A model generated the notes under the pieces. It did no database searches and was not told where the DNA came from. It saw nothing but the letters and a program-made list of their open reading frames with translations. Below are positions 8,453 to 20,946 of a stretch of 32,000 nt of DNA, one piece after another. Source of the DNA: Guillardia theta nucleomorph (lineage: Eukaryota > Protista > Cryptophyta); the NCBI GenBank assembly GCA_000002975.1, contig AJ010592.2, positions 120,001 to 152,000 of the forward strand. The letters run 5' to 3'. Numbering within the stretch: position 1 is the first letter of the stretch; the number at the start of each line of letters is the position of its first letter. The translations under genes and the position numbers were made by a program.

Positions 8453-9265
8453 ATGTCTATATTCAATGCACTGGTAATACCAAAAATATGTAACGCAGTC
8501 TTAAAATCATATCAAAATTCATGGCCGAGAGATTTACTGAAAATTTACACATGTTCTCCTTTAGATTTTCACGCTCAAACCATGAATTGGGACTGTGGCT
8601 ATAGAAATATGCAAACTATGCTGTCTTCTTACTTGAATCACGATTCATCGGTAAGAGATCAATTATTTTCATCAGGAATTATTACGATACCTACATTAAA
8701 AGAACTTCAAAGGTTAATTGAAAGAGCTTGGACAAAAGGATACGATCAAATAGGAGGAATGCAATTAGATTATTCTCTTTATGACACAAATAAATGGATT
8801 GGAGCAACAGAAGTCGTTGCGATGTTACGATCTTGTAAGGTTAGAGCATGTGTTGCAGATTTCGACTTCACTAGCGGTCATTGTGATTTAAATACAATGG
8901 TCAGAGTTGTTTGGGAGTATTTTGAAAGCCGAAATTTATTATCACAAGATGATAATATTTTCATTGCTCCACTATACCTACAGCATCAAGGGCATTCCAG
9001 ACTGATTCTTGGTGTTGAAAAATGGGCGAATGGAGATATTAAACTATTGATATTAGATCCTCAGATGAGAAGAGCAATACAATTTCATCAAAGAGTTGGC
9101 GATGAAGCAAATATTCTCAGACAAGGTGTGAGTACACATGGTTTAAATTCTAAATCAAAATATCAAATTGCATATTTATCCGAAAAAAATATTTATAATC
9201 AAGAGATGGAACACTCGAAGATAATTGTAGATGAATTAAGACACCCTAAGTTAAAATTTATTTAA
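8453..9265 (+). CDS. ZUFSP/ZUP1-Mug105 family (peptidase C78) cysteine protease or deubiquitinase, catalytic domain only
   Basis: WDCGYRNMQ (Cys48), LQRLIERAWTKGYD, KWIGATE, PLYLQHQGHSR (His181), LLILDP (Asp202). Confidence 0.88.
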   Translation: MSIFNALVIPKICNAVLKSYQNSWPRDLLKIYTCSPLDFHAQTMNWDCGYRNMQTMLSSYLNHDSSVRDQLFSSGIITIPTLKELQRLIERAWTKGYDQIGGMQLDYSLYDTNKWIGATEVVAMLRSCKVRACVADFDFTSGHCDLNTMVRVVWEYFESRNLLSQDDNIFIAPLYLQHQGHSRLILGVEKWANGDIKLLILDPQMRRAIQFHQRVGDEANILRQGVSTHGLNSKSKYQIAYLSEKNIYNQEMEHSKIIVDELRHPKLKFI

Positions 9266-16693: not shown

Positions 16694-17610
16694 TTAATTT
16701 TTTTGAATTTTTTTTTAAATTTATTAATAAAAGGGCCATCGATTGAATATAATATGTCTTTGTAATGATCATAATATAACCTAGGTTTATTTAGATGATG
16801 ATATTTTTTAAAAATTTGATTATAGGATCTTAAATAAAGTTTTGTTTTTTCTAGAATAATTTCGTTAATAAAACCATCGATTGTTGTTATTAAATTTAAA
16901 TTAGGGAACATCATAATGTCTGAAAATTTTTTTACATAGCAATTTAGACTTTTTTCTATAGCACCATCCTTTCTGTAAAAAAAAATTTCATTTTTTGAGA
17001 TTGAAGTAAAATAATTTGAAAAAGGAGAATATTCTATTTTTTTAATCTTTTTTTTGTGATTTTTTAAAATTTTGGTAACTTTATCTGATACAATATCATA
17101 TAAAATTATTGATTTGGTAAAAGAATCATAAATTAAATGAGGACTTTCTTCCTTGAAAATTAGTTCTTTTGAGAATTTGCTAGATTTTTTTAAAATTTTT
17201 ATCGGTTTATTAAGTCTCAAGTCCCATAATTTGATTGTTCCATCAAAAGAATTAGAAACAATAAGATCTAATATAGAATGTTTTTTAATAGAATATATTT
17301 TTGAGGAATGTGCAGAGAATTTTCTCATTAAGCAATTTTTATTTAAATTCCATAACATAAGATCATAGTGTTGTCCTGTCGATATGAGTAAATTATACTT
17401 ACTCAAAAACTCAAAAATATCGTTTGTGAATTCACAATCTAGGTGAGAGATCATTTTAAAATTAATTAAATTGTATATTTTAAGTATGTCTTTATCTTTC
17501 AATAATAAGTAGCTTCTTTTTGATCCCAAAAACATTGCCTCGAATTTTTTTTCATCAATTCTGATAGATTTTTTTTTTTCATAATATGGAATGATAGAGT
17601 AACTATTCAT
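16690..17610 (-). CDS. prl1: Prp46/PLRG1 (PRL1)-like WD40 splicing factor
   Basis: LMRKFSAHSSKIYSIKKHSILDLIVSNSFDGTIKLWDLR and KVTKILKNHKKKIK align with PLRG1 [39 protein letters not shown] and KTRVTLTNHKKSVR. Confidence 0.78.
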   Translation of the reverse strand: MNSYSIIPYYEKKKSIRIDEKKFEAMFLGSKRSYLLLKDKDILKIYNLINFKMISHLDCEFTNDIFEFLSKYNLLISTGQHYDLMLWNLNKNCLMRKFSAHSSKIYSIKKHSILDLIVSNSFDGTIKLWDLRLNKPIKILKKSSKFSKELIFKEESPHLIYDSFTKSIILYDIVSDKVTKILKNHKKKIKKIEYSPFSNYFTSISKNEIFFYRKDGAIEKSLNCYVKKFSDIMMFPNLNLITTIDGFINEIILEKTKLYLRSYNQIFKKYHHLNKPRLYYDHYKDILYSIDGPFINKFKKKFKKIN

Positions 17611-17642: not shown

Positions 17643-17903
17643 ATGATAATTTATATAATAAAAAGAGATATAAAATTCAAAACAATAACTTCAATATCGA
17701 GAATAAAATATAAAAAAATTAAAAATAAAATTAAAAATTCAAATACAGATTTTAATCATTTCCTGAAAAAAATCCTATTAAATAAAATAAAGAATTTCAT
17801 ATTAATATATAAATATTCTTATAAAACTAAAGAGTATTTAATGAATAATTTGTTTCAAAAACAACTAGGGGTAAAATATCCACAGTTATATCAATTTCCA
17901 TAA
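17643..17903 (+). CDS. Small basic hypothetical protein (86 aa) with weak resemblance to Nop10
   Basis: ATG-initiated ORF filling the gap; see findings. Confidence 0.5.
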   Translation: MIIYIIKRDIKFKTITSISRIKYKKIKNKIKNSNTDFNHFLKKILLNKIKNFILIYKYSYKTKEYLMNNLFQKQLGVKYPQLYQFP

Positions 17904-19023: not shown

Positions 19024-20001
19024 ATGATTGTCTTAAAGGAAATTAAGTTTATTAAAATATCTAAGAATTCAAGAATATTTAAAAATCATAAAGAAAGTTT
19101 TTTAAATTTAATAGAAAGCAAGTATGGAATACCATTCGTGTATAAAAATATTTCCAATAAATTATTTCATAAATTCTATATTTTACAAATTATATTATGC
19201 TTAGGTTTTTGTTTTATAAAATATCATTCTGATTTATTAAAAAAAATTAAGAAATATCATTTTACCTATTTTTGTTTTTTTAATTTTATTTCCAATCTTG
19301 ACGAAAAATTCAAAATAAAAAAAAATATTGAACTAAAAAAATTTATTTTAAAGAAAAATAAAAAGTTAAAATACAAAATTCTTTTTAAAAAATTAAATTT
19401 ATTTTTCAACTGTGTTTTGATAAAAAAAAATATTAAAAAAATCTTTAAGTCTCAAGGTTATATGACAAATAAATTTAACATAATTAATTGCTGTAGTTTA
19501 ATTAAAAATATGAAAATTTTGATTACAAAAATAGATAGAATGATAAATTTTACTTCTAAAAAATTGGTTTTATTATTTAAAATTTTAAAACATGTAATAT
19601 TAACAAATGAAAAAAAATCTAATTCTATGACTACTTTTTTATTTACCATGATTTCTACAAAAAATATAATTTATATATGTAGGATTTTAGTAGCATTTTA
19701 TGATATCAAATTGAAAATAATACAAAACAATAAAAAATTGATTTTTTCAATCAAAACTATTTGGATGATTAACGTATATGCATTGCATTTTTCATCAGAA
19801 TGTCAAAAGATTAATTTAAAAAAGATTTTACCAGAGAAAATTTATTTTAATGATTTTATAATTCTTTTCTGTTTAAAATTTTTAAAATTACGTAAATACA
19901 ATTTAAATAAATTATTTAAAAAAACTAACAATTTTACTCTAAAAAAATTAGTTAAATTATATTACACCTTTACGCTATTAAGAAATGTAAAATATTGTTA
20001 A
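19024..20001 (+). CDS. Hypothetical protein (325 aa, K/F/I/L-rich ORFan)
   Basis: Long ATG-initiated ORF; no motif recognised. Confidence 0.65.
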
Positions 20002-20024
20002 AGTTATTAGATACTGTAGTTTTA

Positions 20025-20219
20025 ATGAAATTTATTGATTATTATAGATTAAGGGGTGGAGCGTTAGACAGCGTTTCGATGAATATAGCGCGTAAAAAGC
20101 TTTGTGAAAAACTAGTATGCAGAAAATGTTACGCAAGAATGCATATAAAGGCACATAATTGCAGGAAAAAAAAATGTGGCCATTCAAATAAACTCAGATT
20201 AAAAAAAAAAATCAAATAA
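20025..20219 (+). CDS. rpl40: 60S ribosomal protein L40 (eL40) with a vestigial 12-aa leader ending in RLRGG instead of ubiquitin
   Basis: [12 protein letters not shown]|[52 protein letters not shown]. The first in-frame ATG is at 20025; the track's start at 19995 is a TTG. Confidence 0.93.
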
Positions 20220-20223
20220 TAAT

Positions 20224-20295
20224 GGCGCTATAGCTTAGTGGTAGAGCGTTGCACTAGTAATGCAAAGGTCATGAGTTCAACTCTCGTTAGTGCCT
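20224..20295 (+). tRNA. trnT(AGT): tRNA-Thr (anticodon AGT, 20256-20258)
   Basis: Acceptor GGCGCTA/TAGTGCC, D loop TAGTGGT, anticodon arm TTGCA-CTAGTAA-TGCAA, T loop TTCAACT. Confidence 0.96.
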
Positions 20296-20298
20296 CCT

Positions 20299-20904
20299 CT
20301 AATTATAATTTCTCATCAACGTGTTAAATAGCATGTAATATTTTGATGTTTTTGATTCTTCAATCGGCATTAATTTAACGAAACTATATTTGAAAAACAT
20401 CAAGAATTTAGATAACCCAACCAGCTTTTCTATTAAACTATCAATAATTCTTGAAAATTTTAAATTAATAATAATCAAATTTCTAAAAGCATTACATAAA
20501 ATGATGTAACTAACCATAGTTTTTTGTATTTGTAAAATACTATCACTACAAGAAGAGAATAGAAAAGTGTGAACTAATTTTTTTTGATAAATCCAATAAT
20601 ATTTTTTATTGATTTGTCTCATTTTTGTCAAGTATCTATTTTCATTAAAACAAAAAGTTACTATTTTACATGATGAATTGATTTTTAGTTTATTAACTAG
20701 ATCGATATTTTCAATATTTTTAATTAAATTAATATACTTAGAATTTAAATTTTCATAATTACAAAAATTCTGACATGGTATAACTTCAATTAATTTTAAA
20801 TTTTTAATTATTTTGCTAATTATATAGAGTTTATTTTTTATGGATAATTTTAAAGATCTTCTTCTTTCTATTGAGTGATAGTTGTTATAAAAACAATAAT
20901 TCAT
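20299..20904 (-). CDS. Hypothetical protein (~201 aa)
   Basis: ORF tiling between the tRNA and rpt5. The first ATG is at 20904; the track uses GTG 20940. Confidence 0.65.
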   Translation of the reverse strand: MNYCFYNNYHSIERRRSLKLSIKNKLYIISKIIKNLKLIEVIPCQNFCNYENLNSKYINLIKNIENIDLVNKLKINSSCKIVTFCFNENRYLTKMRQINKKYYWIYQKKLVHTFLFSSCSDSILQIQKTMVSYIILCNAFRNLIIINLKFSRIIDSLIEKLVGLSKFLMFFKYSFVKLMPIEESKTSKYYMLFNTLMRNYN

Positions 20905-20946
20905 TTTAGTATATAAAAATTTTATTATTTTTAAATTCACAAGTAA

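Follow-up and report, generated by a model that had tools for sequence, protein, structure and literature searches.

Eukaryotic eL40 is normally made as a ubiquitin fusion that is cut after LRLRGG. For the fusion of ubiquitin to eL40 and eS31, found in nearly all eukaryotes, the proposed reasons are a chaperone function, dosage coupling, and a frozen accident. Several departures from this arrangement are described. In FUBI-eS30 (cut by USP36), a nematode ubiquitin-like eS31 fusion, and a divergent Ub-eL40 (P0022), the ubiquitin has decayed but a ubiquitin-like domain of ~75 aa and the junction GG are kept. Among our matches, the ubiquitin of the ubiquitin-eL40 fusions in one eukaryote group (P0003, P0022, P0104) is strongly diverged and has MAGG or IAGG as its last residues. 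In archaea, giant viruses, and the nucleomorph of Cryptomonas paramecium, eL40 stands alone, its Met lying at the junction or beside it, and LxGG is absent; stand-alone eL40 genes are on record (PMC8122580). According to a yeast study, a non-cleavable Ubi1 is lethal as the sole source of eL40, and eL40 without ubiquitin works only at raised gene dosage (PMC6721733).

A short tagged leader in front of eL40

The window is a 32,000-nt stretch of the Guillardia theta nucleomorph (contig AJ010592.2, positions 120,001 to 152,000, forward strand), with 16–33% GC and a dense complement of eukaryotic housekeeping and plastid-related genes. In window coordinates, the features around its eL40 gene are:

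19024..20001 (+): 325-aa ORF upstream, without a Pfam match, ending 23 nt 5' of the eL40 ATG
20025..20045 (+): leader start codon and 7-aa variable part, in the place of the presumably lost ubiquitin domain and without ubiquitin similarity
20046..20060 (+): RLRGG, equivalent to ubiquitin residues 72–76 (P5–P1), with a predicted cut after 20060; across nucleomorphs, conservation is limited to [LI]xGG
20061..20219 (+): ribosomal protein eL40, 52 aa and stop, zinc-finger cysteines intact
20079..20081 (+): internal in-frame ATG at eL40 residue 7 (Met19 of the ORF), a possible alternative start
20224..20297 (+): tRNA-Thr(AGT), directly 3' of the eL40 gene

The ORF at 20025–20219 encodes a 12-aa leader ending in RLRGG and then a 52-aa eL40, as a preliminary description of this DNA had read it; the translation and a match to Pfam Ribosomal_L40e (PF01020, E 2.4e-19) bear this out. 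The leader GG is in register with Gly75-Gly76 before eL40 in normal fusions, and the chance of finding RLRGG at this fixed place is ~1e-7, calculated from the amino-acid frequencies of the window. The first six eL40 residues of G. theta are unusually diverged relative to sister nucleomorphs.

No Pfam ubiquitin match occurs in 20025–20219, and BLAST of ubiquitin against the leaders gave matches limited to their last 4–10 residues. The preliminary description had further claimed that no in-frame ATG lies upstream of 20025 before a stop and that no GT-AG intron restores ubiquitin, and both claims hold. The nearest upstream stop is the TAA at 19953–19955, with no in-frame ATG between it and 20025, and enumeration of GT/GC-AG introns of 18–150 nt yielded only fusions to the 325-aa ORF or a 55-aa product. 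Around the eL40 gene there is no GTAAGT donor, and the 325-aa ORF ends so close to the eL40 ATG (23 nt) that there is no room for a ubiquitin exon.

The RNA data, which the preliminary description had proposed as a check for an upstream exon, contain no joints at eL40, either in raw reads (one run, ~6% of it sampled, 977 short reads aligned) or in three contig sets, and two RNA contigs span the stub unbroken. With the strand taken from neighboring genes, sense RNA depth rises from 0.4 (19778–19911) to 7.3 (19912–20045) and 32.5 (20046–20179), and these bin means give an estimated transcript start roughly 10–30 nt around the ATG. We infer that translation begins at 20025. A set of 26 RNA reads has loose ends at 20061–20063, exactly at the junction between GG and eL40. 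Their mutual agreement is 0.47, with no common sequence, and the ends are probably library tails; as most reads of the run also carry non-matching tails, nothing is drawn from them.

Because the ubiquitin domain was tested for and is absent, the gene falls outside the class of ubiquitin-eL40 fusions, although its processing step is most likely like that of the class. It resembles the Ubi1/Ubi2 (yeast) and UBA52 (human) precursors in gene lineage, in eL40, and in the register of the GG junction, and presumably the same bond is processed. In contrast to these precursors, the nucleomorph leader is 7–34 aa of free sequence without a ubiquitin fold, so neither release of ubiquitin nor a cis-chaperone effect is possible. 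The junction GG is also what it has in common with the decayed fusions above, which retain a ubiquitin-like domain where the stub has none. Stand-alone eL40 likewise has no ubiquitin domain, but in G. theta a tagged leader is kept, the first ATG lying 12 codons upstream of eL40 rather than supplying a Met at the mature N-terminus. By sequence comparison, the stub is real, conserved across cryptophyte nucleomorphs, and unlike both the known stand-alone eL40 genes and the degenerate fusions. We found no description of a leader reduced to its cut site in the literature searched, and an earlier mention is possible.

Conservation of the leaders across nucleomorphs

Relatives were gathered by two homologue searches and cluster look-ups, and removal of near-duplicates left 32 distinct nucleomorph-type leaders, 7–34 aa long, among the matches listed. 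For six metagenomic proteins, a gene order in common with the window or Hemiselmis andersenii showed that their contigs are of nucleomorph type; the remaining metagenomic eL40s were assigned to nucleomorphs by resemblance alone. Since 52 aa carry too little signal for a tree, clade statements are based on names, synteny, and shared sequence. Leaders from named cryptophytes include:

Chroomonas mesostigmatica: 7-aa leader ending in NLRGG
Hemiselmis andersenii: 10-aa leader ending in SLRGG
Cryptomonas curvata: 31-aa leader ending in RLLGG
Cryptomonas sp.: 33-aa leader ending in HLRGG

Both P1 and P2 are Gly, and P4 is Leu or Ile, in all 32 listed leaders. The other two positions of the motif vary: P3 is Arg or Lys in 27 and P5 is Arg in 13, with the full RxRGG in 4/32 and Rx[RK]GG, basic at both positions, in 9/32. 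In 31 of the 32, P3, P5, or both are basic, and a single leader has a basic residue at neither. Four of the five leaders without a basic P3 have Arg at P5, these being related by shared ancestry and not phylogenetically independent. From P6 outward the sequences are close to random (entropy ~3 bits), and a Met never occurs nearer than P6, which sets the minimum leader at Met plus five residues. The filter used for leaders demanded GG; the unfiltered list was also inspected and, among the matches listed, holds no nucleomorph-type leader without it.

In a comparison of two close marine nucleomorphs, pN is 0.23 and pS 0.31 in the leader, compared with 0.01 and 0.35 in eL40, and the LKGG of the same pair shows three silent and zero replacement changes. 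The leader frame stays open throughout and has exactly 28 codons in one group. This is the pattern expected of a translated peptide whose sequence would be free except for a protected end, and the conserved signal is [LI]xGG, usually L[RK]GG, rather than RLRGG. The preliminary description had proposed selection on RLRGG and an alignment of rpl40 leaders across cryptophyte nucleomorphs. Selection on the junction is upheld by the invariant GG and P4 and by the absence of non-synonymous change in L[RK]GG, and the alignment retains [LI]xGG in 32/32. The unit it had named is too wide, with P5 Arg in fewer than half of the listed leaders and RxRGG in only 4/32. Its argument that a GC-rich RLRGG in an AT-drifted genome implies selection is weak alone, since codons for Gly and Arg necessarily contain G/C.

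The retrieved loci, which did not reach the eS31 gene, contain no other short leader tagged with L[RK]GG, such as one on eS31. In databases, the eL40 stub genes of C. mesostigmatica (L001 3001-3180) and C. curvata (P0103) are called 'ubiquitin' without having a ubiquitin domain, and counts of nucleomorph ubiquitin genes may be inflated by stubs so named.

Leaderless eL40 in Cryptomonas paramecium

On rescoring, 11/32 leaders would still reach the top list after replacement of their GG, and leaderless genes would appear in the top 120 in only 3/32. The homologue list is therefore biased against leaderless genes, and for this reason rpl40 of C. paramecium was reached by chromosome walking from other genes, without eL40 as bait. 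The ubc4 bait found it. A walk along one end of C. paramecium chromosome 3 did not meet rpl40, and a metagenome scan baited with Tab2 returned two loci, with eL40 in neither. C. paramecium has rpl40 twice (PMC3017389), and we find both copies bare and subtelomeric:

L022 9026-9178: bare rpl40 copy
L023 9022-9180: bare rpl40 copy

In both, Met stands in place of the P1' Ile, which is the first Ile of eL40, with no GG ahead of it. The chromosome 1 copy ends two residues early, and an LSM-like ORF lies upstream of the rpl40 copy in L027. Set beside the yeast dosage requirement, the presence of two copies in this leaderless species is a single anecdote. Four bare 53-aa eL40 proteins (P0008, P0010, P0013, P0027), one of them named as from a Florenciella giant virus, also have a Met just before the usual cut site.

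Two states of eL40 were seen, either a leader with LxGG or no leader and a start at the cut site, which suggests a propeptide that must be removed. As the bare C. paramecium eL40 begins with Met at the junction, LxGG is no needed part of the mature protein. The stub is thus not universal in cryptophyte nucleomorphs, and a gene whose start codon has shifted to the junction can dispense with the tag.

A candidate processing enzyme

The window also encodes a candidate for the enzyme:

8453..9265 (+): orf270 (Gt2_270), 270 aa, ZUFSP/ZUP1/Mug105-type cysteine protease core, candidate processing enzyme

Zauner et al. 2019 recognized its homology in four nucleomorphs and called the pathway unpredictable (PMC6559170). 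The protein matches Pfam Peptidase_C78 (PF07910, E 7e-47), its closest solved relatives by sequence are beetle ZUP, human ZUP1, and Mug105 (7OJE, 6EI1, 7OIY), and its predicted structure (pLDDT 80) matches ZUP at E 1e-17 versus 5e-9 for UFSP. It shares with these enzymes the fold, an intact triad (C48/H181/D202), the Arg-binding Asp/Glu pair (D98 and E120, matching ZUP1 D406/E428, which bind ubiquitin Arg72/Arg74), and the tunnel tryptophan (W115, matching ZUP1 W423). It has no ubiquitin-binding domains and, like Mug105, lacks the zUBD, MIU, and zinc fingers. The pocket residues are kept in 33 nucleomorph-type homologues (54–100% identity), one truncated sequence lacking the cysteine. Because they are invariant, no co-variation with leader P5/P3 was seen, and as D98/E120 do not vary anywhere in the family, their presence in orf270 is no specific sign of a role in eL40 processing. 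Identity between G. theta and C. paramecium is 74% for orf270, 77% for cpn60, 60% for eL40, and 45% for SerRS; since C. paramecium keeps this orthologue without an eL40 leader, the enzyme has other substrates. Most cryptophyte nucleomorph homologues of orf270 are 73–83% identical, and its 33% GC is far above that of neighboring genes. The C. mesostigmatica copy is more divergent (59%) and longer (373 aa), and proteasome genes are lost in that nucleomorph.

Known substrates of the ZUFSP family are K63/K48 chains and the artificial RLRGG-AMC; in the literature searched we found no natural substrate that is a ubiquitin-free peptide. ZUFSP and Mug105 are highly active on the pentapeptide RLRGG-AMC, whereas USP21 is not and most other DUBs hardly cut it, and in both human ZUP1 and Mug105 the two acidic residues contacting Arg72 and Arg74 are required (PMC5824887, PMC8776766). 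NEDD8 ALRGG is uncut by a ZUFSP enzyme (PMC5824887), and the ZUFSP activities described in the literature searched are those on AMC amides and isopeptide-linked chains (K63, K48, weak K11), not on a linear peptide bond. The pentapeptide has the same size as the five residues after Met in a minimum leader. The G. theta leader fits an R-x-R-G-G substrate rule. It speaks against the link to orf270 that only 4/32 listed leaders are RxRGG and only 9/32 Rx[RK]GG, although 31/32 are basic at P3, P5, or both.

Proposed origin and processing of the leader

We propose that an ancestral ubiquitin-eL40 fusion gene from the red-algal endosymbiont lost the ubiquitin fold, probably before the divergence of the sampled cryptophyte nucleomorphs. 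With the start codon staying upstream, eL40 would still be made with a short disposable leader, and a deubiquitinase-type protease reading only the last 4–5 residues would cut after Gly-Gly to give the normal eL40 N-terminus. The most likely cutter would be the nucleomorph-encoded orf270 because the ZUFSP family cuts the bare RLRGG peptide and typical DUBs need folded ubiquitin. Once recognition is confined to the tail, the precursor would no longer be under pressure to maintain a ubiquitin fold, and the tag would be kept because the extension must be removable. The sole escape seen is that of C. paramecium, where a new Met stands at the junction. We assign this model as a whole (loss of the fold, cleavage after GG, and orf270 as the enzyme) a probability of about one half. 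Cleavage of the leader after GG, which the preliminary description had also held probable, appears quite likely, and if it occurs orf270 is probably responsible.

The leader might instead be cut after GG by a different LxGG-reading protease, either an imported host DUB or another nucleomorph protease, with orf270 acting on ubiquitin chains only. The invariant motif is indeed [LI]xGG, not RxRGG, which fits USP-fold enzymes such as viral papain-like proteases, whose recognition rule is LxGG, and orf270 persists in leaderless C. paramecium. G. theta also seems to draw its periplastid ubiquitin and E1 from the host nucleus by import (PMC12412216), a route that could be open to a DUB as well. The same study reports that ptDUP, the DUB of other red-derived complex plastids, is absent in cryptophytes, which require an alternative enzyme (PMC12412216). 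Considering further that bare peptide is hardly cut by typical DUBs (PMC5824887, PMC8776766) and that a two-acid pocket would favor the distribution of basic residues (P3 or P5 in 31/32, and P5 Arg in 4/5 without a basic P3, not phylogenetically independent), we regard a different protease as unlikely. It is improbable, too, that the leader stays uncut, with LxGG kept in mature eL40 as an N-terminal extension that is flexible or contacts rRNA: the leaders vary from 7 to 34 aa in hydrophobic, AT-drifted, near-neutral sequence, their conserved positions are P4, P2, and P1 of a protease site, and the C. paramecium protein has no LxGG, its start coinciding exactly with the cut site. Many leaders are nevertheless short (6–10 aa) and tolerate non-basic residues at P3 and P5, as such an extension could, and the yeast lethality concerns a 76-aa ubiquitin, so that an extension of 7–12 aa might be tolerated.

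Two other readings dispense with a functional stub. If translation began at the ATG at 20079, the G. theta stub would be a non-functional relic and its codons a decaying 5' UTR, and both the internal Met and the deviation of eL40 residues 4–6 from a pattern common to 31/32 relatives would accord with this. The frame from 20025 is open, however, RLRGG is perfect, and sense RNA depth begins upstream of ~20045; the internal Met is missing in most sister genes, so the leader start must be used there, and a relic is very improbable. A full ubiquitin exon, spliced or trans-spliced onto RLRGG and missed here, we consider scarcely credible. Nucleomorph introns sit at the 5' ends of ribosomal protein genes, and the 26 loose read ends fall at the junction, but those ends are mutually discordant in a run where most reads have non-matching tails, the upstream sequence offers nothing ubiquitin-like and no suitable intron, and neither reads nor contigs contain joints. 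Furthermore, the H. andersenii nucleomorph, which has reportedly lost all introns, carries this stub as well, its ATG immediately preceded by a stop.

If cleavage by orf270 is correct, the stub would be the first natural substrate for the unexplained bare-peptide activity of the ZUFSP family, giving the RLRGG-peptide activity of these enzymes a possible physiological meaning and the nucleomorph protease of unpredictable pathway (PMC6559170) a testable job; orf270 may in that case also fill the place of the periplastid deubiquitinase that is missing from cryptophyte protein import (SELMA). Nucleomorphs provide a series from fusion through stubs of 34, 28, 12, and 7 aa to bare eL40, and along this series the cut site persists longer than ubiquitin, so that the need to remove the extension is separable from the need for ubiquitin. 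We tentatively suggest that nucleomorphs could run a ubiquitin-free processing in which LxGG-tagged ribosomal precursors (eL40, perhaps eS31) are trimmed by a minimal ZUFSP protease.

Neighboring genes

Reads on both strands cover rpl40 and tRNA-Thr at similar depth (20046–20313), and a minus-strand 213-aa ORF (20299–20940) seems to read through into them as antisense. The 325-aa orphan (19024–20001) sits between Tab2 and rpl40. It has positional counterparts of 344–416 aa in Hemiselmis, Cryptomonas, and Chroomonas loci, with similarity undetectable, and is absent from the marine group with the 28-aa leader. In the position of an 86-aa ORF (17643–17903), sister nucleomorphs carry genes of 152–205 aa. 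RNA molecules start near 17559, and the gene may extend beyond this ORF or may be in decay.
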